Assembly (NCBI GenBank): GCA_011109175.1
Contig: RDEW01000024.1
Span: 241,199 to 305,198 of the forward strand
Source: Dicyema japonicum
Lineage: Eukaryota; Animalia; Dicyemida
Length of the DNA: 64,000 nucleotides
Reading direction: 5' to 3'
The notes below the pieces were generated by a model. It made no database searches and was not told the DNA's origin. It was given only the letters and a program-made list of their open reading frames with translations. Within the stretch, counting starts at the first letter, position 1. Each line of letters begins with the position of its first letter. A program made the position numbers and the translations under genes. Positions 26,291-61,928 of this stretch are shown piece by piece.

Positions 26291-27199
26291 AATTAAAAAA
26301 AGTACCCAAATGTTTCAAATTCCCAAATTGGCCACAAATAGTTCAGAACAATTTGGGCAATTTAATGGACTTTACTGTATACGGTTACCCGACCATTAGC
26401 GTCACTATATTTTTAAGGGTAAAAAAAAAACAAAAACAAACTTTCTTAAATTTTCTCATTTTCAGCACCTCCTCTGAAGACTTGGATTGAGAAATGTCGT
26501 GTTAGAGGTAATGGAACATGGAGATTGTCCGTATAATGATAAATGTAGGTATTATCAAAGATATCGGGTCTTCAATTCCTTCTTCATAACAAAGAGTTTT
26601 TAAAGATTTCAGAAAAAATCGTCATTGAAGTAATTACCGACATCATTCATTGATGTAATTTCAGGTTCTGATGACCCCTACTGGAATATGGGTAGAAAAT
26701 CCTGAATCAGCTCTTCCATCTTGGTCTTTAGGATAATGAAAATCCAATTTCATTGTGAGTTTCAGAATGTTTTTTTTATCCAAAATTATATTCACCCTTA
26801 TCCGAATATTAATAAACAGAAAGTGACGTTATCGATCAGGAAAGTACGCTATATTATTTTTAAAAATTCATAACAATTAAAATAATAACAAACCGTTCAA
26901 AACTTCTAAATATTTCTTTCAGAAAAAGTGGTCGCTCATTGAGAAAACGCATTTCTCGTGAAGATTTGTAAGGAAATGCACTCTATAAACCACTCCTTTC
27001 CCCTTTATCCTTTTTTGCTCAACGCGAAAAGCGATCCAATGTACTACGCAATGTTCAATAACTCTTGATGTTTCAACGGCTACTGGCGAAAAAAGTGAAC
27101 TACTCACCGTGACATTTGTGTTTATTTTTCTTATTTATAATTTAAGTAAAAATAATTTAATTAATTTATTAACCACATATACACGAGAAAGAAGTTAAC

Positions 27200-27528
27200 C
27201 GTATTTTGCCGCGTAGAGCCATGTGGTGCTGCGTGGTTAATTGGTTTAAATTTTCTGTCTGCTTGTCTGTACCTCCTCTCTCTTCCTAATAGAGTGGCGT
27301 CATGTGATCCACCTGTCTAGGTGACGTCCAGTGCCAGGCCGGCATGAAAAAGGATCATTTGCTCTTCCCCACTCCACTGGAGGGGCTTCCACAACTGCAT
27401 GTAATGGACGACCTACCCTTTATGCTGATTCCGGATGGACTCTGTTTCTGTAGAAGTGGATACTGGATACACTTAATTAGTTCTTTACTTTAACTTCTTT
27501 CTCGGTGTATCCGGGGTTAATAAAGAAA
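27200..27528 (+). mobile_element. Young full-length SINE-B
   Basis: Highly similar by eye to 44219-44557 and 49496-49828; 12-bp TSD AAAGAAGTTAAC (27188-27199, 27529-27540). Confidence 0.88.
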
Positions 27529-27850
27529 AAAGAAGTTAACAGTGAACAACTAGTTAAGTTAATCCAGTTTCCACTGTTACGAAAACTGTGTCCTTCAACG
27601 TCACAAAGTCCATCCGGAACCAGCATAAAAGGTGAAAACGTCCATTCCTTGCAGTTGTGGAAACCCCTCCAGTGAGTGGGGGAGTATATAATCCTTTTTC
27701 GTGCCAGCCTGGAATTGGGCGCCACCAGAGACTGGTTAATCACATAACGCCACTATAGTAGGAGAGGAAAAGGAGGAACAAACAAAACATACAAAAACTT
27801 AAACCAATTAGCCACGTAGCAAAACATGGCCAAACACGCAACGAGGCGAA
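27529..27850 (-). mobile_element. Older SINE-B, whose tail was interrupted by the young copy
   Basis: Aligns along its length in reverse. The remaining tail piece TACACGAGAAAG lies at ~27180-27192. Confidence 0.8.
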
Positions 27851-28032: not shown

Positions 28033-30532
28033 ATGAGCAGACAAAACAAGCACAAATCTATATATAAAAGACAGAAAGGTAGTAATCCCCATTAATCATA
28101 GACGCACTACTAAAAATGATGAACTTCAACACTATCGTCGATAATATTACTTCTATTCATCCGCAATGGAAGATTCTCATATACGACGATTTTTCCAGAC
28201 AAATAATTGCTCCCCACGTGTCCCTTAAAGAACTGCGAAGATTAGGAGTGACTTTACACCTGTACTTGTCATTCAAAAAAAATTTAGTGGCCTGTATGAG
28301 AACAGAGAAGCGGTCCCTGAGGTGTTGGCCATCTACTTCGTACAGCCTACTGAGGAGAATATAACGAAAATCTGCAACGTTCTCCTTATAAATTAAACCA
28401 TTCTAGGATATGAAAAAGGGAATGTATCAGAAATATTATCTTCATTTCACATCTTCCATTTCTCGCAAAAATTTAGAATTCCTTGCTGACTCGACCATCC
28501 GATCATCAACCGACCACCTTGTCTCAAAGGTAATTATTTTATTCAAAAATTAAAAAAATTATTTTTAATTTTATATTTTTGTTTTTTTTCAGGTTTTTGA
28601 CCAATATTTGAATTTCATGGCCAAAAGTTCAGATTTGTTTACTTTGGCTGAAGCGCAGACGTCCAACATGTCCCTGTTCACTCTCAACAATCCTACTACC
28701 TCTGACACTGTCATAGAAAGTTCGCTAAAATCAATTGTTGAGGGACTACTTTCATTCTTTGTGACTTCTGGTTGTTTTTCGTTGTATTTTAGCCTCTATT
28801 CCTATCATTCGTTGTTACTCTTCGTCAGAAATTTCCGCCAAATTTCGACCTTGTTGGACGAGAAGTTTAGAGATTCCTTAAGTGATACTCGTAGCTGTGT
28901 TTTTGCGTGTGATCCTGTATATGGAACTCCCATAAGGTTACTTTATATTTATTTTTTCAGTTTCCAACGTCCTTTATTGCTCATAGTGGACAGAGCTACA
29001 GATGTTGTTAGTCCTCTTCTCCATTCTCCACCTATGAGGCCTTACTTCACGATGCCTTGGTACGTCGAACTTTTGACTGATTAGGAGTACAACAATAACT
29101 CTGTCAGACTCCGTGACGTTAACGGAAAGAACACATCGACGCACGTGCTTGATGAGGACGACGCTTTTTGGTGTGAAAGCCGACATTTGTAGAGATCTGT
29201 TGGAATTTGTAGGAAAATTGACTCTGTGGCTGGAAAAATGAACGAAAGACTGTCACAAATCAAATTAGAGGAGGAACGACTTAGGGAATTTACTGTATTT
29301 GCTTGATTCATCTCTTAGAAGCAAAATTCAGAAAAGCAGGGTGATCTGGTGGGTGACAACATGTCCACAGTAAAGTATTACTGTCTGTTTATTGTGGGGA
29401 TCTGACTGATTTGCTTGGAAGGAAGAAGCTGGTTGAAATGCACACTGAAATTGGTTCATGCCTGTTAAAGCATATTGAGGTTTCTATTTGCTTTTGCTTG
29501 TGAACCTGTTGCAACATCTAACGCGGCGAATTCTGGATTTTTAATTGTTTTCAATTTTATTTATTTTTATCTGCTACATATCAACATGACTAAATTATAA
29601 TATGGTGGCGAACCTTTTAAATACATTATTTTAATTTAATTTTACTTGTGTTTACTAATCTTATTAAATACACTAATTTTAATTATTTTTTGTCAGCCGT
29701 AATAAATAAACTTTCTGTGTAATTAAAGCTTTTTTTTCTACTAGCGAATCATATTAAATACATTATTTTAAATTAATTTACATTTAGGCGCGAAAATTGA
29801 ATGTTTTCTATGATACGGAAAAAAATTACAAAGATTGCGTTCATTCAAAAGTAATTCAATAATTTATTTTATAGGAAAAGTCCCTGTTGGCTTTAATGGA
29901 GTCAATCGATGGTGGCAATCAGGCTGACTTGCACAGATTCTTAGCTATCTGTTCTCTGTGCGACGACTCTATCACTCAATCAGAGATACAAGAAGCTGCT
30001 GAAAAGTTTAATATTCCGCAGAACCAATCAATCGCCTACATTCGTAAATTTAAGTCACATGCCCGCCTATCATCCATGTCCTCCACTTCGCAGTTTGACA
30101 TCAAAAGTGTAGCTGGAAACGTACTCGATAAACTCATCACCGAGGGGGCTCGGTTTTTGGGGGATCAAAAGAAAGTATAATTTATCGAAAAATCTTTAGG
30201 GAGTTCCTTTGATTGATATGATTGACAAGTTGATCGACCCCCCTCCTCAGAACTCTGTTTTGCAGTTTGACCCCAAATCGACGAAGGTTTCGAACGAAAA
30301 GTATTTTGGAATTTTTATTTTTTAGAAATCTTCTCAAGAAAGTGAATTTTAGTGAGGTTAACCTAATTTGAATTTTTTAATAGATTGTCGTTTTTGTGAT
30401 TGGCGGGGGATGCTATGTTGAATATGAGGCTATTTCTCGCTATAAAATCAGACGGAATAAAAATATTATTTATGGATCCACTGTCTTGTATCCCCCAATG
30501 AATTTCTTGAACAGGTGAGGGAGTTGGCTTAA
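28033..30532 (+). CDS. SCFD1: Sec1/Munc18 protein Sly1/SCFD1 (multi-exon)
   Basis: IYKRQK|DALLKMMNFN, WKILIYD, LKELRRLGVTLHL, YFVQPTEENI, VFDQYLNF, PLLLIVDR..D..SPLLH, FVIGGGCYVEY, IIYGST. Introns of 22-28 nt plus longer ones. Several indels. Confidence 0.93.
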
Positions 30533-30899
30533 TTTAGCTTAATAAATTGGGAGAGGCCTACTCTGCAAGTAAATGAATGATTATATTTATTAACAATAAA
30601 TTTTTGATGTTATTTGATTTATTGGAGATGACGATTTGTTGAAGGGAGTGAGAGTCTATGAGGACAGAGTATACCAAGTGACTTGTGAGTTTCCTGAGAA
30701 GGGTTTATTCAGTGTAAGATGGTTATTTATTGAATTATCTATTGTTTTTTATTTTTGACAAATTTTGGTTTAAATAACAATTAGTTAATGTTTCTAGTTA
30801 TGAAGACTTTTGAATTTTCTATAAGTGATCTTTATTCAACATTTATAAACATTCATAAATGAAGTTATTTTTATAAATATTTTGATTATATTAATAACA

Positions 30900-32640: not shown

Positions 32641-32918
32641 GACAGGTTGGAAACTTTATTCACTCACAGAATTTATTAAAGAGGAAGAAGACCCATTTTT
32701 TGATTTATATAATCATTAACTAGCAATTCGTCATTTGAAAAAGGCTGGTAATTCGTATACTGAATTAGCAACAGACATATATTCCATCTATTCGCTGGTA
32801 AAAAAACGAGGTTTGTAAAAATTTATTAATTTTAGATTTTTCAAATTACCGATTATTTTTAAGGTTTTCTCATTTCTTGTAAATAACAGGTTTTCTTATA
32901 TATGTTATGTTTTTAGGT

Positions 32919-35620
32919 TGATTAAACAAATGCTGATGTTAGTGAATTTTATATGACAAAGTTCTTATCAATGCATGAATAAACAAATGCTGATGTTAGT
33001 GAAAATTTTATATGACAAAGTTCTTATCAATGCATGATTAAACAAATGCTGATGTTAGTGAAAATTTTATATGACAAAGTTCTTATCAATGCATGATTAA
33101 ACAAATGCTGGTGTTAGTGAAAATTTTATATGACAAAGTTCTTATCAATGCATGATTAAACAAATGCTGATGTTAGTGAAAATTTTATATGACAAAGTTC
33201 TTATCAATGCATGATTAAACAAATGCTGATGTTAGTGAAAATTTTATATGACAAAGTTCTTATCAATGCATGATTAAACAAATGCTGATGTTAGTGAAAA
33301 TTTTATATGACAAAGTTCTTATCAATGCATGATTAAATAAATGCTGGTGTTAGTGAAATTTTATATGACAAAGTTCTTATCAATGCATGATTAAACAAAT
33401 GCTGGTGTTAGTGAAAATTTTATATGACAAAGTTCTTATCAATGCATGATTAAACAAATGCTGATGTTAGTGAAAATTTTATATGACAAAGTTCTTATCA
33501 ATGCATGATTAAACAAATGCTGATGTTAGTGAAAATTTTATATGACAAAGTTCTTATCAATGCATGATTAAACAAATGCTGATGTTAGTGAAATTTTATA
33601 TGACAAAGTTCTTATCAATGCATGATTAAACAAATGCTGGTGTTAGTGAAAATTTTATATGACAAAGTTCTTATCAATGCATGATTAAACAAATGCTGAT
33701 GTTAGTGAAATTTTATATGACAAAGTTCTTATCAATGCATGATTAAACAAATGCTGATGTTAGTGAAAATTTTATATGACAAAGTTCTTATCAATGCATG
33801 ATTAAACAAATGCTGATGTTAGTGAAAATTTTATATGACAAAGTTTCTTATCAATGCATGATTAAACAAATGCTGATGTTAGTGAAAATTTTATATGACA
33901 AAGTTCTTATCAATGCATGATTAAACAAATGCTGATGTTAGTGAAAATTTTATATGACAAAGTTCTTATCAATGCATGATTAAACAAATGCTGATGTTAG
34001 TGAAAATTTTATATGACAAGTTCTTTATCAATGCATGATTAAACAAATGCTGGTGTTATGAAAATTTTATATGACAAAGTTCTTATCAATGCATGATTAA
34101 ACAAATGCTGATGTTAGTTGAAAATTTTATATGACAAAGTTTTATCAATGCATGATTAAATAAATGCTGGTGTTAGTGAAAATTTTATATGACAAAGTTC
34201 TTATCAATGCATGATTAAACAAATGCTGATGTTAGTGAAATTTTATATGACAAAGTTCTTATCAATGCATGATTAAACAAATGCTGATGTTAGTGAAAAT
34301 TTTATATGACAAAAGTTCTTATCAATGCATGATTAAACAAATGCTGATGTTAGTGAAAATTTTATATGACAAAGTTCTTATCAATGCATGATTAAACAAA
34401 TGCTGTGTTAGTGAAAATTTTATATGACAAAGTTCTTATCAATGCATGATTAAACAACATGCTGATGTTAGTGAAAATTTTATATGACAAAGTTCTTATC
34501 AATGCATGATTAAACAAATGCTGATGTTAGCTGAAAATTTTATATGACCAAAGTTCTTATCAATGCATGATTAAACAAATGCTGATGTTAGTGAAATTTT
34601 ATATTGACCAAAGTTCTTATCAATGCATGATTAAACAATGCTGATGTTAGTGAAAATTTTATATGACCAAAGTTCTTATCAATGCATGATTAAACAAATG
34701 CCTGATGTTAGCTGAAAATTTTATATGACAAAGTTCTTATCAATGCATGATTAAACAAATGCTGGTGTTAGTGAAAATTATATGACAAAGTTCTTATCAA
34801 TGCCATGATTAAACAAATGCTGATGTTAGTGAAAATTTTATATGACAAAGTTCTTATCAATGCATGATTAAACAAATGCTGATGTTAGTGAAAATTTTAT
34901 ATGACAAAGTTCTTATCAATGCATGATTAAAAAATGCTGGTGTTAGTGAAAATTTTATATGACAACAGTTCTTATCAATGCATGATAAACAAATGCTGAT
35001 GTTAGTTGAAAATTTTATATGACAAAGTTCTTATCAATGCATGATTAAACAAATGCTGGTGTTAGTGAAAATTTATATGACAAAAGTTCTTATCAATGCA
35101 TGATTAAACAAATGCTGCATGTTAGTGAAAATTTTATATGACAAAGTTCTTATCAATGCATGATTAAACAAATGCTGATGTTAGTGAAAATTTTATATGA
35201 CAAAGTTCTTATCAATGCATGATTAAACAAATGCTGGTGTTAGTGAAAAATTTTATTATGACAAAGTTCTTATCAATGCATGATTAAACAAATGCTGTTT
35301 AGCTGAAATTTTATATGACAAAGTTTCTTATCAATGCATGATTAACAAATGCTGATGTTATTGAAAATTTTATATGTCAAAGTTCTTATCAATGCATGAT
35401 TAAACAAATGCTGATGTTAGTGAAAATTTTATATGAACAAAGTTCTTATCAATGCATGATTAAACAAATGCTGATGTTAGTGAAAATTTTATATGACAAA
35501 GTTCTTATCAATGCATGATTAAACAAATGCTGATGTTAGTGAAAATTTTATATGACAAAGTTCTTATCAATGCATGATTAAACAAATGCTGGTGTTAGTG
35601 AAAATTTATATGAAAAAGTT
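32919..35620 (+). repeat. 59-bp tandem satellite, ~46 copies
   Basis: Unit TGATTAAACAAATGCTGATGTTAGTGAAAATTTTATATGACAAAGTTCTTATCAATGCA. The register shifts by one base per 60-nt line. CTGATG/CTGGTG variants and scattered indels. Confidence 0.98.
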
Positions 35621-36989
35621 CTAAGGTTTTGGATTTATATGTGAAAAATGTCCTATTGAGGATAAATGATAAACTTTTCTATTGAAAGTGTAAATATGAG
35701 TTTGACTATCTTTTTTAATACATTGAATTAAAACAAATTGTTTATATTACTGTCACTAAGCGAAAATGAAAAAGAATTTTGACATAATTCTCTGTGTACT
35801 GATGATTTCAAATTTTAAGAAATTTAGATTTTAAGACTTTTTCAAAATTTAATGTATTTTATAAACTGTTTTTGATTTTCGCAGTTGTTTTTAAATTTTT
35901 AGATTTATGTATTATTTATTACCACATTATTATTAAATTTGTTATATTAAAAAAATTACATAATTTAGTGAAAAATTATATTTTTATCCTCTGATATATT
36001 AAAGAAACATGAAAATAGCTAAGTTTTAATTTCTTGTCAAATTAATTTTACTGTAAAATTAGAATGTAGCAACATTTGGACGAAAATTGAATGAAAATTG
36101 TCCAATTGTGAAAATGATTGTTAATAAGTTTTACTTTCTAGTGAAAGTGTACACATGAATTAATTTTTGTTTTAATTTATATAGAAATATATTGTTACGA
36201 TGTCAAACTGAGATCTACTTTTTCGAAATTTGAAGTATTTTAATATATAAACTGTTTTTTTTAATTTTTGCAATTTTTTAAAATTATTCGATTTATATAT
36301 TGTTTGTTACCACATTATTACAATATTGTTATATTCAAACAATTGCATAATTTATTGTAAAATTATATAATTTTAATTTTTAAACTAATAAATTTCTTTT
36401 TTAAACTACTTCAGACAAAGGCTTCCTTCAATGAGACTCGAGCAATGCGAAGGACTGGTTGAGACAGAGGCTCGAAATTGGGGAGATTTACTAAAAGACT
36501 TTACTTGTTTTTTTTAAATTAATTTTAAATTCACTTAGAAAGAAGTGTACGAAATTCTAAGCCAGACCATGTTAACACATTCACGTGGACTTAATGAGAT
36601 TCTTATCAAACTCTTAAAAAATCTGGACAAGGTGCACTGACCAAAGTTTATAATTCGTCTATAAACCGCAAAAACTTGAGAGCATCCGGCCAACATAAGT
36701 TAAAAAAGAAGCCTACATCATTCAGTTTACTTTTTCTTTTGTGTTCAATGTACAAATCGTGGAAAGCTCGTCATTGTGAAAGTCAACGAAATTCTCTCTG
36801 ATAAACTTTTCGCCACATATTTAAAAATGATAGATAAATTGAAAGTCATCTCATCCCCATGACTGATTTCATTTGCTCTGGCTTCTTTTAAAAGCCAAGA
36901 GATAAAAAGACCGTTTTGTGGTCAGTTTACATCTGTAAGCATTCAATATCCAGTTCCCAAGTAGAATCTTACTTTGACTATTTTTTCAA

Positions 36990-39179: not shown

Positions 39180-41590
39180 ATTCGCTGATTGTCGTGCTTT
39201 TATTATCGGGGATAGTATATTTAATATGAGGCTATTTCTCGCTATGAAACTGGACTAAATTTACTGTCATGTATTTTTCCAAAGAAATTCTTAAGTAGTT
39301 AAGGGAGTTGGTTTATTTTAGCTGACTAAATTGGGCGAGGCCTATAAGCAAGTAAAAGAATGACTATTTTTATTTATAATAAATTTTTGATGTTATTTGA
39401 TTTAGTGGAGATGACTACTAGTTCTTGAGGAATGGAGAGTTTGAGGTCGATCATCAGCACGTAAATTTATATTTTTTCAATACTTAGTAAGGAAGACGGA
39501 TTTAAATTTAGCAAATTTAGAAATTTTAGTTTAGATGATATTTCATTTAAATCCAAATATATTAAATTTAAACTGGTTTATTGGAATATGCCTGTGGGCT
39601 TTAAAGTCAAGAAGAAAAAGAAAAATAAGAATCCTTAGTTGAAATGAAGTAATTCACATAATATATTGAAGAAATAGATTATAATAATATTTCCTAAAGT
39701 TTCGGCGGTTTGTCTAATAAAGAATGTTGCTGTAACTTTCTCAGGTTTACTATTTTTCAATAATACTTTAGGAATGCTTAGCTGACATATTCATATTAAT
39801 GGATGATGCCGATTTATTGGAGAAATAGGAAAAATGAATTAATTTTACACTTTTAAAATAATGTTCAAATGCAGACAGATTATTTTGAACCACGGAGATC
39901 AGGTTTTTTGTGTTTATTATGTTGTAAGCCTCAAGAAGTTTAAATGGAGTTTTGCTTCGAAAATAATCCCTTTTAGCAATTTTAATAAAATTATTTTAAA
40001 TTCATTGAAATTTCATGTTTTTACAGGAAAATCTTAAAGTGAAATGGAAAATGTTGATTCTAATTTATATATGAATTTTTGATATTACAATAGTATTAGT
40101 AATCCAATGTTTATTTCTAATCAAACTGTAATATTGTTTTTATGTATTGAATCCAAATATTAATGATATATTGTGAATGTGCTCCATTCATAAACACAAT
40201 TTTCGATGTTTTCATTCACAAGTTAAATTCTAAAAGTAATATGTGAAGATGTGTATCTTCTATGAATGATTACTATCACGGCGTGTATAAGGATGACATG
40301 GAAAGCTGTATTATAGAAATTCTAGTTTTGAATTTAGGGATAGTTTGTCATGTTCAAAATTATTAATGTAATATTATATATTGCTTTACATTTTTGGGGA
40401 TTTATGATATATTTACTTTTATAAAAAAGGAATATAGTCAAAGATGTGAGATTTTTATAGTGATTGTTATTTAAAAGTTCATAAATTATTTTTGACGATA
40501 TGACGATATATTTATATTTCAATATAATTTTGGATATTATTGCACAAAACTGGAAATTGTACTGCAACTATATTAGAGTTTATTGATGATACCTGAGAGC
40601 ATTGAAGTCAAAGCTCTAAACAAGTAAATTTTTATGATTTGGAGACTTTCTTCACTTACATATATTATCGAAGCATTTAAAAATCTATTTTAGATTTTTA
40701 TAATCATTCATTCTATAAAGATATGGTATTTTGTCAGGTTAACTTTCAAAAATAAGATAGATATGCCTTTAATGAATTAGCGACAGATTGATATGCTCTT
40801 GATTTGCTGGAAATAGAAAAGATTTGTAAAAATTTATTAATTTTAGACTTTTCAAACTATGTTCAATAATAAACAAATTATCTTCAACCACCATACAATA
40901 TCACGTTTTTTTCGTAGATTTATTATTAGATTCAAGAAGAGCTGTCTTGAAAATTTACTGATACACAAATCGCCTTTGACATTTTCGTTTGTTGTATAAA
41001 TTCTATGAACCGTTTATTAAATTGTTAAATTAAAGAACAAGAATATTGACATGAAAGATCAAAAAAATTTAAAATCCAAAATAAAGATTTATATAAATTC
41101 TTCAAACCTAAATTAATATTCCTTAATTGTAAGAAAAATGCATATCCTGATTTATCAAAGCGTGATTAAACAGACGCTGATGTTGCTGAAAATTATTTCA
41201 GACAATGTTCTAACGTTTTGGATTTATATATGAAAAATGTAAAATTGTGAGGATAAATGATAATTTTTTAGTGAAAGTTTAAAATATGAGTTTGAAAACT
41301 GTTTTAATACATTGGATCTGAATAAAGTGTTAATATTACTGTCATTAAGCAAAAGTGAAGGATAATTTGACTTAACTCTGTGTGCAATTGATGAATTCAA
41401 ATTTAAATAAATTTAGTAAGATTTTTTGAAATGTAAAGTAATTTTATTTTTGTTGATTTTCGCTCTTGTTTCAAAATTCTTGATTTAATATTATTTATTA
41501 CCAAATTATTATTAAATTGTTATATTAAAACGTTACATAATTGAGTGAAAAAAAATATATAATTTGGAAAATTAAATGCAAGAAAATTTG
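39180..41590 (+). repeat. Segmental duplication unit 2 (SCFD1 last-exon copy, RRM-like pseudogene, single satellite monomer)
   Basis: AATATGAGGCTATTTCTCGCTAT (SCFD1 exon), TATGCCTTT..GAATTAGCGACAGA (RNP1 exon), and monomer at ~41160. Confidence 0.8.
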
Positions 41591-41599
41591 ATCCTCCAT

Positions 41600-41850
41600 T
41601 GTTCAAATATAGACGAATGTGTTGCTATGTGGCTAGTTGGTCAAAAATTTATTTTCTTTCTTTCTGATGTTGTCATTGGATCCATCTTACTGAGGAGACG
41701 CCCAATGTCTAGCCGGTATCGAAAGGATTAACTACTCTTTCCACGGGGGACAATTTCGTTACCTGAAGACAAGTTCTGCAACGCTGGAACAAGTCAGGAT
41801 ATGGAGTTTGTTAGTTTGGTTACCCTTGGTCTTTGGAATAATTTAATTTA
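41600..41850 (+). mobile_element. Diverged SINE-B-related element
   Basis: Core TGTCATTGGATCC..GACGCCCAATGTCTAGCCGGTATCGAAAGGATTA; tail CCCTTGGTCTTTGGAATAATTTAATT shared with 45560-45845. Confidence 0.65.
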
Positions 41851-44218: not shown

Positions 44219-44557
44219 TTATTTATTTATAACCCCGGATACACCGAGAAAGAAGTTAAAGTAAACAACTAAATAAGTGTATCCAGTTTCCACTTCTACA
44301 GAAACAGAGTCCATCCGGAATTAGACGCACAAAGGGTAAGACGTCCATTACATGCAGTTGTGGAAACCCTTCCAGTGGAGTGGGGAAAGAGCAAATAATC
44401 CTTTTTCGTGCCGGCCTGGCACTGGGCGTCACCTAGACAGGTGGATCACATGACGCCACTCTATTAGGAAGAGAGAGGAGGTACAGACAAGCAAGCAGAA
44501 AACTTCAACCGATTAACCACGCAGCACCACATGGCGCCACGCGGAGATTATTATTAT
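44219..44557 (-). mobile_element. Young full-length SINE-B
   Basis: 10-bp TSD ACGAAACAAT (44209-44218, 44558-44567) and (TAAA)n tail. Confidence 0.9.
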
Positions 44558-45559: not shown

Positions 45560-45845
45560 TGTCATGCCATGCGGCTAATTGATTGAAAATTTCTCAAGCT
45601 TCTTTCTGATACGTCATGGATTCACCTTACTCAGAAAACGCCTAATACGGGCCGGCATTCAAAGGATCCATATTCATTCCAATGAGAAACAATTTCGTTC
45701 CATGGCGACGAGTTCTGGTAACGACTAGCTCCCCGGTAATGTCCTCTGGATCACTGTGCTTGTGTGAGGGTTCTGATGGAAGCGTCAGAATTAAGGAATT
45801 AGTTAATTTTGTTTTCCCCTGGTCTTTGGAATAATTTAATTAATT
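45560..45845 (+). mobile_element. Diverged SINE-B-related element
   Basis: CGTCATGGATTCACC..AACGCC..GGCCGGCATTCAAAGGATCC core. Confidence 0.65.
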
Positions 45846-45854
45846 TATTACTCC

Positions 45855-48330
45855 TTATTTGTGATTGGTGGGGAATACTATGTTGAATATGAGGCTATTT
45901 CTTGTGATAAAATCCGTAAGAATAAAAATGAGTTATGGATCCACTGTCCTGTACTCTCCAATGAATTTCACGAGTAGGTGGCTTTATTTAGCTTAATAAA
46001 TTAGGAGAGGCCTACTCTGCAAGTAAATGAATGATTATATTTATTAATAATAATTTTTTGATGTTATTTGATTTATTGGAAGTGAGGATTTGTTTTAAGG
46101 GAATTGAGAGTTTTTGAGGATGGGCCATGTCAAATTTGCTTGTGAGTCTTCTGAGAAAGGTTTATTAGTTTAAGATGAGTTACATTTAGTTATTTGTTGA
46201 ACGATCGTTAATAATCGCCATTTTATTTTTTATAATATTTTGTTCAAAAAATTCTAGATGAAGACTTTGAATTTTGTACAAGTAATCGTTATTTCAACAT
46301 GCATCAATATTCATGAAATTAACTTATTTTATATGAATATTAGTTTCGATGACATATTTATATTTTTGGTCATAACTAAAATTTATATTTGACATGTATA
46401 TGTTAAATATAAACTTTTAAAAGGTGATGGTATTTTAGAGAACACTCATTATTTGAAAATAATGTTTATTATTTCTATATTTCCGTACATTTTTGGTATT
46501 TCGAGTATAAGTGAATTTATTTGTTATTATTAAATTAATGATATTGAGGACGGTTTACTTTAATTTTTTAGTTTTGCTGCCTTAATGAAATATTGTGATT
46601 TTGCTTAATTCATTATACAAGTTTCGATATTTTCAGCCAAAAGCGATTTTCTAATAACTTGTATTTCTATGAGTGAATGTTATCACGGCATGAATAAGAT
46701 AGCATGTAGTCCTTTATTGTAGAATATCAAAATTCTTATAGTTTGAGTAATTTGTAATATACTAATGTTATATTATTAAATTTGACTTTTATAAAGACTA
46801 GTATAAAGATATGAGACTTGAAATTTATACTCGATTTAAACTAAAATTTATTGGATGATGTCCGCGGGCATTCATGTCAAGAGCGCACTAAACAATAAAT
46901 GGTATTTTGGCAGGTGCAAATTTTTAAAATACATTACTGAAATAGACAGATGGATATGCTCCTGATTTACTGTAAAACACGAGGTTTTAAAATTTATTAA
47001 TTTTTAAGACTTTGCAAACTAAGTTCAGTAATAAATAATTATCTTCATCGACCATTCAATATTTTTTTTCTCGATTTTTATTAGGTTCAAGAAGAGCCGC
47101 ATTGAAAATTTTACTGAACAAAAGACGTCTTTTCAATTTCGTTTTGTCGTTTAAATTTCAATGAACGTTGATTAAATTCATTAAATCGGAGAACATGGAA
47201 TATTTATATTGAAGGATTCACAAGATATTTAGAATCAAAAAAAGATTTATGCATATTCTCCACATCTATATTATATTTCTTGATTGTTAGGAAAATTCAT
47301 ATTCTGATATTTATCAATGCATGATTAAACAAATGCTGATGCTACTGAAAATTCTACATGACAATATTCTAGCGTTTTGGATTTACACATAAAATGTCGA
47401 ATTGTGAAAATAAATGTAAATCTTTTCTAATGAATATTTAAATATAGAGTTTGAATGTTGTTTTTGATATATAAATTGTTTATATTACTGTCACTGAGCA
47501 AAGGTGATCAATATTCCGACATACTCCTCTATGTACTTAATGATTTCAAATTTTAATAAATTTAGTTTTAAGATTTTTGATTTTTAATCTGTTTGTTGAT
47601 TTAAGCGTTGTTTTAAAATTCTTTAATTTATTTATTACATTATTATATCATTGAAAATTACATAATTTAGAGAAAAATTATATATATTTTATTTTATATA
47701 GAGATAATGTTACTAATATGTTAAAGAAACACAATGAGAATTGAAATTTAAAATTTTAAAATATCGTTTAAAAGCAAAAATGTATTTTTGAAACATGCAA
47801 GAAGATCAGAATTTCATTATCATATTTTAGACTCAAGAAGACACAATAACTATTACAATTGGAATTTGTACGCCAAAAAATAACTTTTTATTATTTTAAT
47901 AAAATTTTCTTCAAATTCATTAAAATATAATTTTTTTTGAATAACGTTGATTTTAATGTCTATATGACTTTTTAATGACAATAGATAGAAATCAAATGTT
48001 AATGTTTTTACTGAAAGTGGAAGTATGAATTCAACTATTGTTTTTATATATTGAATCCAAATAAACCGGTAATATTAACCAAAAATAAAAATGAGAGATA
48101 TTTTTGAGATATGCAATATTTAATGATTTCAAATTTTAATAAATTATGTTTACACGGACTTTTCGAAATTTGAAATATTTTCAATTATATAAACTGTTTG
48201 TTGATTTTAGCCGTTGTTTAAAAATTCTTCAATTTATATATTATTTATTATCACATATATTATTGCAATAATTACATAATTTAGTGCGAAAGTATTAAAA
48301 ATAAATAAAATTATTATTATTCTTATAATA
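45855..48330 (+). repeat. Segmental duplication unit 3
   Basis: SCFD1 last-exon copy (TTGTGATTGG...TATGGATCCACTGTC), GAGAGGCCTACTCTGCAAG, monomer at ~47320, and a shared AT-rich tail. Confidence 0.85.
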
Positions 48331-49414: not shown

Positions 49415-49880
49415 AAAAGCCACACGCACGTGAAACCCGGTGGCTTTTCAGATGATATCTGTTGCAATTGTGAGAGGCAGCGCTACGTCGGTAATTTATT
49501 TATTTATTTATTAACCCCGGATACACCGAGAAAGAAGTTAAAGTAAACAACTAATTAAGTGTATCCAGTTTCCACTTCTACAGAAACGAATCCATCCGGA
49601 ATCAGCATAAAAGGTAAGACGTCCATTACATGCAGCTGTGGAAACCCCACCAGTGGAGTGGGGGAGAGCAAATGATCCTTTTTTCGTGCCGGCCTGGCAC
49701 TGGGCGTTACCTAGACAGGTGGATCACATGACGCCACTCTATTAGGAACAGACAAGAAAGCAGAAAGCTTCAACCAATTAACCACGCAACACCACATGGC
49801 TCCACGCGGCTAATTCAGAATTTTTTTCTCGGTAATGTCGGCTGGGACCACGTTTGATGGATTTTTGTATTAATTAAATT
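49415..49880 (+). mobile_element. CRE-like 3' fragment interrupted by SINE-B
   Basis: Nucleotide match to 8245-8365 on both sides of the insert. Confidence 0.8.
49496..49828 (-). mobile_element. Young full-length SINE-B
   Basis: 8-bp TSD TCGGTAAT (49488-49495, 49829-49836) and (TAAA)n tail. Confidence 0.9.
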
Positions 49881-55341: not shown

Positions 55342-55679
55342 AACAAACAAATTAAATTCAAATTTTAAATATATTTATTTAAATTAGATTTTATTTTTAC
55401 AGGAAACACAATAAAATCAAAATTAATTCAAGTTTCATAATAATAATGTTCGCTTTCAGCGTGGCGTCTTGAGGTTCACAAGTAACAACAATTCTGTTGG
55501 CGCTCAGAATGCTCCTAAAGGATCTCGAAAAAAAACAATTAGCTCTTTTCCACCGGGGTTTATGTCCCCTGGTCGATGGATTACTGGTTTCTCAGATTTG
55601 TGATCTACACAAGTTAAAGGATCGGATCTCTGTTATCAACTAAATGTGAACAGAATTAAAAGCAAAATTATTAAACTTA

Positions 55680-56085
55680 GAACTCTGATTGTTATACTCA
55701 AAGTTGACATCGTGCTCATCCCAGAATCCACTCTATCAGCAAAAGATTTTACGCCCATTTATCCCGGATACAATATAATACCGATTCTACTAAGAAACGT
55801 GGAGAAGGACTACTTGCATTAATCAGAAATGGCCTAAAGTATGAAGACTATACATTCGAAATGAGAAATTCTTGGAAGGTGATGAAACCACAGTAATAAT
55901 CAGAATACCTTAACGTTTCTCAATGCCAGACTTATCAGCATTGGAGAGTTGGAACGAAGTTTTGATATGCGGCGATTTAATTGCTAAACACCATATCTGG
56001 CTGTTAAATTAATCTGCAGATTCAAGAGGAAATTTACTGTTGTCGCAGTCTGGCAATTTTACAATCATCAATGACCAATCAAAAA
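55680..56085 (+). mobile_element. Degenerate APE endonuclease fragment of a LINE
   Basis: KVDIVLIPES, PGYNII, VLICGDL.AKHHIW. Confidence 0.65.
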
Positions 56086-59479: not shown

Positions 59480-60480
59480 TTCGCTCGCGGAATATAAATA
59501 AGTAACGTGGGCTTACTGTAACTCGTAGAAAAATTGCTGAAGCCCACGTTGATCACTGAAAGGAAGAAAATCGAAGACAAAATGAATGGCCAGTATAATT
59601 TTAAATAATCTAAAATCGTCTCCATGTTAAAGATTGAAATATACTTGTTTGGCAGGCAAAGGTGGCAGTTTATAAAATGTGGATATATTTATACTGAGGA
59701 GAGTGTTAACATACTAGTTGTATAAATCTAAGTACATCTCCATAAACTCGACGTGTTTTAGAGTATGATTTCATTTCGACAATTCAATTTAAAATGCTTT
59801 CAGATCTGACATTGTATTTTCATATCCATAACAAACAAATTAAATTCAAAATTTAAAATATATTATTTAATCAGATTTTTATTTTTACAGGAACACAATA
59901 AAATCAAAATTAATTCAAGTTTTATAAAGTTTTATAAACAATAAAATCAAAATTAATTCAAGAGGATATCTTATTTTATTTACGTTCACTGTGTAATCTC
60001 CAAGTAATTCATTTTCATATGAATCAAGAGATATATATGGACCAGATATTTTGTCGGTTTTATAATCTCTTTTTTCTTAAGAAAATACATTGTAAGTTAA
60101 CCATGTCAGCAAATTGATTAATTCTAATTCATATGTAAATTTGCTTTCTCTGAAAATATATTATGGTTGTTAATAAATCTTAGATTTTCTGTAAAGATAC
60201 CCTTTCTGACTTGGATCTCCAGCACAGAATATGATTTTTCTAAAGTGAAAAATAATTTGACTATATTTTTTCAATAATATTATTCCATTGGATTTCATAA
60301 ATATTTATCTTCTCTGTTGAAATCATTGATTGATTCATATTTGAAATTGATTGAACACGAAATAAAGTAAGTAAAAAATAAAGGGCTTGTTAGATAATCA
60401 GGCCAAGCATTTTAATTAATTCTGTATACTTTTTTATTTAAAAATTTTTCAAATATTAAAATAAAATTATATTAAAAAAT
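59480..60480 (-). pseudogene. Chimeric duplicate: cathepsin 5' exons joined to a truncated CNEP1R1 copy
   Basis: 59480-59960 copies 54985-55440 with an in-frame TAA; 59965-60480 copies 58185-58700. Confidence 0.88.
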
Positions 60481-60519: not shown

Positions 60520-61928
60520 ATTTCCCCCCGCTGATTATTTTCTCCTTAAAGATGTATCAAAGCAATATCAAATCTGAAAAAAAAAACTCATGTGGCCTAG
60601 AATTCCTCTATTCTACTGAAACCTTGGGCCACCATCAATAAATACATTAACAATCATCTACAAACACATCGCTGAACATAAATACCATACCGCTTTATGG
60701 AAACTATCAAAAATTCATCCAATATTGAACCGGAAGACCGAATAAACGATCCCGGCTCTTTCAGACAGTTTCTTTTATATGTGTTTTGTCGAGGATCCTG
60801 GAGAAACTGGTCCTAAAAGTTATTCGCCCTCTCTCTCCAATTTACATTCCAACATGGCTTTCAAGGAAGGATTATCACAACTCATTCCTAACGACATTAA
60901 TGAAGTTCATAACTGAAAAACACAAGAACAAGCCAAAACAAGAAAAATCGGTCATATGTAGGATCGACATTCAAAAAGTTTTCGACTCTGTCCCAAGGAA
61001 GATCCTCATTACGAAATATATTTTTGATAAAAATTGATGCACCATTAAAGTTATGGTTAGCAAATTTCGTAAGTGGACGCCGAGGGAAAGTGTCCGTAGG
61101 AAACAAGAGTTCCAGATCGGGATTATTACCCAATGGTGTACCTCAAGGATCCCTCTGTCACCAATCATCTTTAATTTATTTTTGAATGATCTCCCCGTAC
61201 CTATGAATAATATTGAACATGCTACTTTCATATGCCGATGACATAGTTGTGGCATCTAGGAACGTAAATATAGAACATGCCAAAGAAAGACTACAAGGAA
61301 TACTAAATAACATATATGGATGTTGTGCGAAAATTGATTATATGCATGTTCCGATAAGTCAGCAGTACTCTATTTCCTAAGAATAGAAAGATGGAACGCA
61401 AACAATTGATGTCACGTTAAATGGAGTACCTATACCACAAAAGAAATCGCAGAAAATACTGGGATTAACTTTTGATACTTTCCTCTGTTTCTCAGCCATG
61501 TGGAATCATCATATCAATCTGTGCAAAGAAGATCAATTTTGTAAAGGCCTTCTTTTAAAGGCCGCCAGGTATCGGGACCCTGTACAAGTAGTATGTCGAG
61601 TTAACAATAGGCTATGCATGTGCTGCATGGGGATCTAACCTGTCGGCAACGAACCAAACAAAATTCAAGAGATCCAGTCAAGAGCAAAAAAATTACTGGA
61701 AAAATATACAGATAAAGAAATTGCCCCAGAGCACTCGATCTATCATAGAAGCAACTGAAGGCAATTTCAGAAGAGGAAAGGAAAAAGACCCCTTCTGTAT
61801 AGAAAATGCGTGGGATCACGGTCGGAGCATCGAGAAAAAATGGCCCGATTATTGAGAGATGCCGGGATCACCTGAATATTATTTATTGGTTAAGACGGTT
61901 TTTCTTTGGCTTAAAATAATAATAATAT
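60520..61928 (+). mobile_element. Sister copy of the 409-2360 LINE, frameshifted
   Basis: Colinear high nucleotide similarity through the RT and 3' UTR; (AAT)n tail. Confidence 0.92.

Follow-up and report, generated by a model that had tools for sequence, protein, structure and literature searches.

HDV-like ribozymes have been described at the 5′ ends of the R2, RTE and L1Tc/Ingi retroelements (PMC3185411, PMC4035085, PMC3774820). In L1Tc/Ingi the first 77 nt make up an active HDV-like ribozyme, which is common to NARTc and SIDER (PMC3185411, PMC4035085). This module of the trypanosomatids, L1TcRz/Pr77, is a HDV-type double pseudoknot of ~77 nt standing at the 5′ end of a LINE and followed, within a single ORF, by a 2A sequence and an endonuclease; it is shared with short non-autonomous elements, and SIDER2 has an internal copy (PMC3185411, PMC4035085, PMC3708506). 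L1TcRz cleaves in vitro at +1 and the elements begin at the cleavage site. N-terminal 2A sequences are found in single-ORF LINEs of six clades, Ingi/L1Tc among them (PMC3708506). R2 also has a 5′ double pseudoknot, in which P1 and P4 are variable and change in a compensatory manner, while P1.1, P3 and L3 are, as in the HDV ribozymes, the most conserved part (PMC3774820); its cleavage sets the RNA's 5′ end, and the element is site-specific. Another pseudoknotted module at a LINE 5′ end is the twister T-variant of Perere-3 from the parasitic spiralian Schistosoma mansoni, which cuts in vivo and whose target-site duplications abut the cleavage site (PMC8501958). SINEs, for their part, habitually carry pieces of LINE 5′ regions (PMC5786205). 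In the bipartite RTE-derived and Ceph-domain SINEs such a piece lies in the middle of the element, joined to another head and to a tail of LINE type, and modules are swapped; the extreme 5′ end of the LINE is usually avoided, possibly because of a ribozyme there, since SINEs would be shortened by one that is active downstream of their head (Kojima 2018, PMC5786205).

In this work, we present a HDV-architecture RNA fold carried by LINEs and SINEs of the dicyemid Dicyema japonicum, studied in a stretch of 64,000 nucleotides of contig RDEW01000024.1 (the window) and in further loci of the same genome. Like L1TcRz, it stands at the 5′ end of single-ORF LINEs ahead of a 2A-like site and an endonuclease, and it is shared with short non-autonomous elements; the likeness is one of layout, and it occurs in a dicyemid animal instead of a kinetoplastid. 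Unlike in L1TcRz, 8–13 conserved bases in the LINEs, or 50–95 bases in the SINEs, lie upstream of the predicted cut, and L3/P1.1 is not conserved. With R2 it has the helix order in common; here, however, the P1.1/P3/L3 part is the least conserved one, copies extend upstream, and the elements are not site-specific. The twister of Perere-3 differs from it in class and fold, and here target-site duplications do not abut the predicted cut. While the SINEs surveyed by Kojima usually spare the extreme LINE 5′ end, it is this very head that was captured here, together with its leader and its ribozyme-shaped fold. HDV-like ribozymes at LINE 5′ ends and LINE 5′ fragments in SINEs were both already known. 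As far as the sequences tell, what is new here is a 5′ module of HDV architecture that has a start codon inside and a 2A site behind, is carried mid-SINE in several families and is transmitted uncut. To our knowledge, no secondary structure had been assigned before to SINE central domains of LINE 5′ origin.

The element in which the fold was noticed, SINE-B, is ~320 bp long. Its window copy (27208–27524, forward strand) is composed, according to the copy alignment, of a head, a pyrimidine-rich linker, the 62-nt core, a body, a 3′ hairpin and a TTAATAAA tail, and extra 5′ bases (27200–27207) lie ahead of it. By direct reading, the upstream target-site duplication GAGAAAGAAGTTAAC occupies 27185–27199 and its downstream partner 27525–27540. 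The element landed in an older SINE-B of opposite orientation (27165–27198 and 27529–27850, minus strand), about 76% identical to the young copy, and hit it in its 3′ part. Thirty aligned genomic copies, that is the window copy and 29 others, are 93–96% identical, and the first pass of the genome search gave at least 1,800 candidate copies (1,820 candidates). SINE-B copies have (TAAA)n or (TAA)n tails, variable 5′ truncation and flanking target-site duplications (e.g. at loci L015, L023, L024, L027 and L030), all of which define SINE-B as a SINE-type retroposon, not a MITE. The look of terminal inverted repeats at the window copy results from the landing of the young element, with a 15-nt duplication, in the older SINE-B of the opposite strand, and a MITE or terminal-inverted-repeat element was ruled out.

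ARAGORN detected in SINE-B no tRNA-like head or core that would point to Pol III. As nothing relevant was obtained from Rfam either, a tRNA, 5S or 7SL origin of core or head was rejected. The head reads GCCGCGT(G/A)G(C/A)GCCATGTGGTGCTGCGTGGTTAATTGG in SINE-B (27208–27250), whereas C-type SINEs have …TATGTGGCTAGTTGGTCA… in its place; both resemble the tRNA D-arm/A-box only loosely. A literature search with sequence words of the element returned unrelated primers only.

The core itself spans 62 nt (27296–27357, forward strand) with the helix order P1-J1/2-P2-P3-L3-P3′-P1′-J1/4-P4-J4/2-P2′. It opens with the P1 5′ strand GGCGTC (27296–27301), paired in 90–91% of the cells of the alignments; a HDV-type ribozyme would cut just before its first base, G27296 (G1). 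J1/2 is ATG (27302–27304), with TGA immediately after it; its A is invariant in the core alignments and its counterpart in LINE copies is the start codon. The P2 5′ strand TGATCC (27305–27310) forms the pseudoknot with the P2 3′ strand GGATCA (27352–27357). Between them lie the P3 hairpin ACCT/GTCT/AGGT (27311–27322), assigned from sequence and pairing counts, the P1 3′ strand GACGTC (27323–27328), in which T27327 makes a G-U pair here and is C in most copies, the nearly invariant J1/4 CA (27329–27330), the P4 hairpin GTGCC/AGGCC/GGCAT (27331–27345), whose closing pair covaries as G-C, A-T and G-U, and J4/2 GAAAAA (27346–27351), the first base of which is G, in contrast to the C of C-type SINEs and LINE families. 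On direct reading this sequence agrees with the layout of SINE-B given in the initial annotation. The opening 15-mer of the core occurs 10 times in the window at up to 3 mismatches, against 0.43 occurrences expected, and so the pattern goes beyond chance. We know of no other RNA class with the same topology.

By eye, an extra hairpin, CCC-A-CTCC/ACT/GGAG-GGG (27367–27385, forward strand), adjoins the core on its 3′ side. LINE copies have a hairpin of other sequence directly after the core (L037, ~1895–1930; L086, minus strand, ~150–190); the stems are CTCC/GGAG in SINE-B, and CCACCCTTCT/AGAAGGGTGG and CCATCCAG/CTGGATGG in the LINE copies. This post-core hairpin is a candidate for a fifth conserved helix, or else for an attenuator comparable to that described downstream of L1TcRz.

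Further cores are present in the window. The second and third young SINE-B copies have theirs on the minus strand, at 44396–44457 (89.2 bits) and 49673–49735 (78.5 bits), where the initial annotation had placed them (the latter at ~49675–49740). Its three compensatory changes were likewise recovered: P3 ACCA/TGGT instead of ACCT/AGGT in the old, ~76% identical SINE-B core that hosts the young insertion (27689–27751, minus strand, 71.2 bits), P4 ATGTC/GGTAT in a C-type SINE core (41669–41730, forward strand), which has a P2 of the GGATCC type, and P2 GGATTC/GGATCC in a decayed C-type core (45608–45675, forward strand). The C-type core at 41669–41730 has the linker CGAAA, and a decayed B-like core that has lost some of P2/P3 (15727–15783, minus strand) has GCGAAA, as had been annotated, but the contrast drawn there between old and young copies is in fact one between families: the linker begins with C in C-type SINEs and LINEs and with G in B-type SINEs, old B copies having G or T. 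Another core (55463–55538, forward strand) is of LINE type and belongs to the 5′ end of a decayed LINE; its AUG is now UUG and an endonuclease frame follows from ~55630. The decayed LINE 5′ end extends over 55441–55900, with the endonuclease frame reading …NLNVNRIKSKI…, and a sequence similar to its upstream flank (55350–55440) is met again at 59837–59927.

Some repeats of other kinds were also noticed in the window. A 59-bp unit forms a long array of more than 38 tandem copies at 32903–35600, and single diverged units are found at 41150–41235 and 47309–47394. Inverted repeats of ~1.1 kb, 88–99% complementary, lie near the window ends, ~59 kb apart (427–1582 and 60766–61906). Three diverged direct repeats (35601–35939, 41190–41518 and 47349–47566, with 30393–30640, 39195–39423 and 45858–46094 as another set) are spaced by ~5.6–6.7 kb, which suggests a tandemly triplicated segment of several kb, the units of which carry different SINE insertions.

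Cores were collected by an iterated nhmmer search of the window and 85 genomic loci (335 kb), which yielded 108 of them. A covariance model built from P1, P3 and P4 alone, with P2 left out, retrieved 93 cores, of which 79 distinct rows were tested. MAFFT alignments A2 and A3 were set aside, as they had the P2 3′ strand of the C-type cores off by one column, and the nhmmer and covariance-model alignments were used instead. In alignment A5 the shift persists in about half of the C-type rows; the counts for P2 are lower as a result, and the test of P2 is a conservative one. With P2 added to the 79 rows, 84.9% of cells were paired (80.4 ± 0.4 after column shuffling), and 83 cells were changed on both sides (35.6 ± 4.8 shuffled); neither value was reached in any of 500 shuffles. 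The covariation score was 0.230, compared with 0.158 ± 0.006 for shuffled columns and 0.037–0.083 when partners were slid by 1–3 columns. In the nhmmer alignment P2 was paired in 92% (z = 8.1), P4 in 86% (z = 3.7), P3 in 73% (z = 3.5) and P1 in 90% of cells, the last one lacking a covariation signal there because it is almost invariant in this set. The helices thus follow the nested double pseudoknot order P1-P2-P3-P3′-P1′-P4-P4′-P2′, all four being 73–92% paired and all showing compensating changes. There are 126 G-U pairs against 92 A-C mismatches (p = 0.025), an excess that favours the sense RNA as the folding strand.

The 62-nt segment is a genuine RNA fold maintained by selection. The covarying nested pseudoknot of HDV-like topology, which the initial annotation had read from a few copies, exceeds every shuffle and slid control in the alignments of collected copies. 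That the complementary stretches arose by chance in a repeat and were passively copied could be argued, as the fold was picked by eye and copies of the young family share it by descent. However, the covariation is between families, and the same architecture persists despite unrelated P4 and P3 sequences, so that we regard this explanation as hardly credible and effectively refuted.

Whole-genome pattern searches that print the matched sequence added more distant families, and the helices vary considerably among them. P2 was found in four versions, all perfectly complementary (TGATCC/GGATCA, GGATCC/GGATCC, TGGTTC/GAACCA and TGGCTC/GAGCCA), and P4 in at least six unrelated ones (GTGCC/GGCAC, ATGCC/GGCAT, GTGTA/TACAC, ATATAG/CTATAT, AAATGCT/AGCATTT and TTCC/GGAA), the P4 of LINE families being wholly different from that of SINE-B. 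P3 occurs as ACCT/AGGT, ACCA/TGGT, ACC/GGT, CCT/AGG or CCGGA/TCTGG, and P1 as GGCG/CGCC or, in LINE type 1, GGTG/CACC. L3 is 4–9 nt long (4 nt in SINE-B) and has no shared sequence (GTCT, TACTG, AGAAAC, TTTTGT, GTTTCT, TGCAACAAC). J4/2 reads CGAAAA, CAAAAA, CTAAAAA, CCAAAAA or CAAGA in the four LINE types and C-type SINEs. A J1/4 of AG or GG tends to accompany an L3 that ends in CT, at inconsistent positions and with two families as exceptions; for J1/4 CA, a matching UG in L3 is present in some families only, at shifting positions.

This variation also bears on the view that conservation acts mainly on DNA or on coding, that is on an internal promoter (B-box-like GGTTCA or of the L1Tc Pr77 type) and/or on the LINE ORF's N-terminal codons, so that the helices would be incidental. 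The block GTCATGTGG(T/C)TCACC is indeed highly conserved with the start codon inside, and the first 77 nt of L1Tc are promoter and ribozyme at once (PMC3383444). Single-sequence minimum free energies are no better than those of shuffles (z from −1.6 to +1.0), although this is expected when a nested algorithm is applied to a pseudoknot. Yet such a view predicts neither complementary double changes in P2, P3 and P4 nor the replacement of P4 by other perfect hairpins, and non-coding SINE versions, with ATG-TGA or ATT, still keep the helices. We consider it very improbable as an explanation; a promoter role may coexist with the fold, not replace it.

The same fold was encountered at the 5′ ends of LINEs. 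In the single-ORF LINEs of this genome the core begins 8–13 nt from the 5′ end. At L037, L055, L086, L005 and window positions 55463–55538 it has no SINE head in front and lies 100–200 nt upstream of …LNVNGI(K/R)(G/N)K… frames, the start of the AP-endonuclease domain; in L055 the endonuclease frames are followed by a region ending in GPDGIP with a weak RVT_1 match. The ATG of J1/2 opens the coding frame: in L055 an ATG-initiated ORF starts at the J1/2 position, in L037 (1828–2040) the frame is open through NVEPNLGP into LQLNVNGIRNK, and the four abundant LINE core types, read by hand, are all open in the AUG frame (MW(L/F)T…). In L005 (2140–2331) a canonical GDVEANPGP stands directly ahead of the endonuclease. 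These LINEs are thus laid out as a short leader, the pseudoknot, whose J1/2 holds the AUG, a disposable leader peptide, a 2A-like skip site, the endonuclease and the reverse transcriptase. Placed between RNA module and endonuclease within one ORF, the 2A-like peptide, of the D(V/I)ExNPGP type, would split off the peptide encoded by the fold.

Three kinds of SINEs, B-type, C-type and GGCTCCAGGGAGC-headed, have the core inside, forming a body derived from a LINE 5′ end. In SINE-B J1/2 is ATG-TGA and in the C-type it is ATT, both non-coding, which marks the SINE versions as non-coding copies of the LINE head. The occurrence of an identical fold at LINE 5′ ends means that the SINE-B core is a captured LINE head; the tie to retroelement 5′ ends, cited from other systems in the initial annotation, thus holds within the genome of D. 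japonicum itself. The fold is the 5′ head of single-ORF LINEs and not a SINE invention; several SINE families, SINE-B included, took it over as a central module. Taken jointly, the claims that the fold is real, that it is under selection and that it comes from a LINE head are held with high confidence.

Whether the fold cleaves itself was approached through the 5′ ends of the copies. None of 65 C-type cores, collected with a core-anchored pattern that left the upstream sequence free, starts at G1, linker being present upstream in all of them. About 92 of 100 LINE-type cores have a family-specific leader of 8–13 nt before G1 (TGTTAGCGT, TTTAGCGT, TTTTCTCGT or GAAACGT), upstream of which lie unrelated flanks; the other ~8 mostly show truncation inside P1 or a divergent leader, with no more than one that may start at G1. 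The GGCTCCAGGGAGC-headed SINE, whose head is tRNA-like, keeps the LINE leader between head and core, and hence the start of the leader was the RNA's 5′ end when the fusion took place. SINE-B copies starting at G1 were likewise not found (0 of 30), ~90 nt being kept upstream. The conservation of leaders upstream of G1 indicates that the retroposed RNA templates were uncut. An efficient cis-cleaver would give many copies starting at G1 and could not pass on a conserved leader. Cleaved RNAs might, however, be unstable or barred from retrotransposition, which makes genomic 5′ ends indirect evidence.

These counts weigh on the most serious competing explanation, a working family of HDV-like ribozymes, in which the LINE versions, and perhaps the C-type SINEs, would cut 5′ of G1, and SINE-B, with G for C in J4/2, would be an inactivated relic. 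The cut would release or reshape the 5′ end and leave the AUG exposed, six bases from the new terminus. Helices are ordered as in HDV and all of them show compensating changes. A C followed by an A-rich J4/2, as the equivalent of the catalytic C75 would look, is found in LINE types 1–4 and in C-type SINEs despite their unrelated P4. LINE types 2–4 have a G1-U wobble at the base of P1 (GGCGTC/GGCGCT, GCGTC/GGCGT) and U at −1. The location at LINE 5′ ends with a downstream 2A is as in L1Tc/Ingi (PMC3185411, PMC4035085), and strong deviations in P1, P3 and L3 occur in some of the accepted HDV-like ribozymes (PMC3774820).

Set against this are, besides the nearly complete lack of G1 starts and the conserved leaders, several features of the cores. 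At the start of J4/2, C is missing from the window copy as from all B-type copies, old and young; as the closing pair of P4 covaries, the G after the 5-bp P4 is in firm register and no artefact. L3 is hypervariable and no consistent 2-bp P1.1 is formed. The base of P1 is G-C, not a wobble, in SINE-B, C-type SINEs and LINE type 1. Furthermore, an active ribozyme behind a SINE head should yield truncated SINEs (PMC5786205). The HDV-type models of Rfam, namely HDV, CPEB3 and drz, gave no match: there was none at gathering score in the window, which is weak evidence with such narrow models, and none of the Rfam ribozyme families matched at E ≤ 10 around SINE-B or three LINE-type cores, the same narrowness applying. 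Hammerhead, twister, pistol and hatchet ribozymes were ruled out by the lack of Rfam matches at E ≤ 10.

Consequently, only a part of the annotation of SINE-B as a HDV-like ribozyme or its relic is retained. Helix order, covariation and the missing C of SINE-B speak for it, while nothing indicates self-cleavage. The proposal that inactivation took place in the young subfamily does not stand, since old B-type copies lack the C as well, and the two reservations expressed there, a short, non-canonical L3 and the upstream sequence retained before P1, proved justified. The window SINE-B copy is almost certainly not a working self-cleaver. Today the fold appears to have no role as a 5′-processing self-cleaver in SINE-B, nor, probably, in the rest of the group. 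Efficient in vivo cleavage at G1 looks doubtful when all members are taken together, and the working ribozyme family is, in our opinion, an unlikely explanation, if one to be taken seriously.

The reading that we favour, with some reserve, is that of a pseudoknot of HDV architecture which probably was a ribozyme and today acts as a structural cis-element without cleaving. It is plausible, as the HDV architecture suggests, that a true HDV-like ribozyme was the ancestor and that its active-site loop drifted later. The putative role would be that of a cis-element recognised by the LINE machinery or by the ribosome, as is the case for the R2 5′ pseudoknot, which, according to work of Christensen et al. 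from 2006, is reportedly also the RNA motif bound by the R2 protein. Recognition of this kind would explain why non-coding SINEs retain the fold. Alternatively, it could control initiation at the AUG that it contains, perhaps alongside a promoter activity such as that of L1Tc Pr77. A more specific version, in which the former ribozyme is reused as a handle, so that the LINE machinery, or the initiating ribosome in view of the AUG in J1/2, can recognise the template's 5′ end, and in which SINEs need this handle for being efficiently copied, is put forward as a speculation that we think rather improbable in this full form. If true, it would give the first structural and mechanistic reason for the presence of LINE 5′ pieces, or ‘central domains’, in SINEs.

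Obtained results indicate that one small genome holds thousands of natural variants of a single HDV-shaped fold, distributed between coding LINE heads and non-coding SINEs. These variants bear on whether a HDV fold can be kept for a non-catalytic job, and on whether SINE mobilisation needs a LINE 5′ structure in cis. Should some of them cleave, they would constitute, as far as we know, the first ribozyme family reported from a mesozoan.
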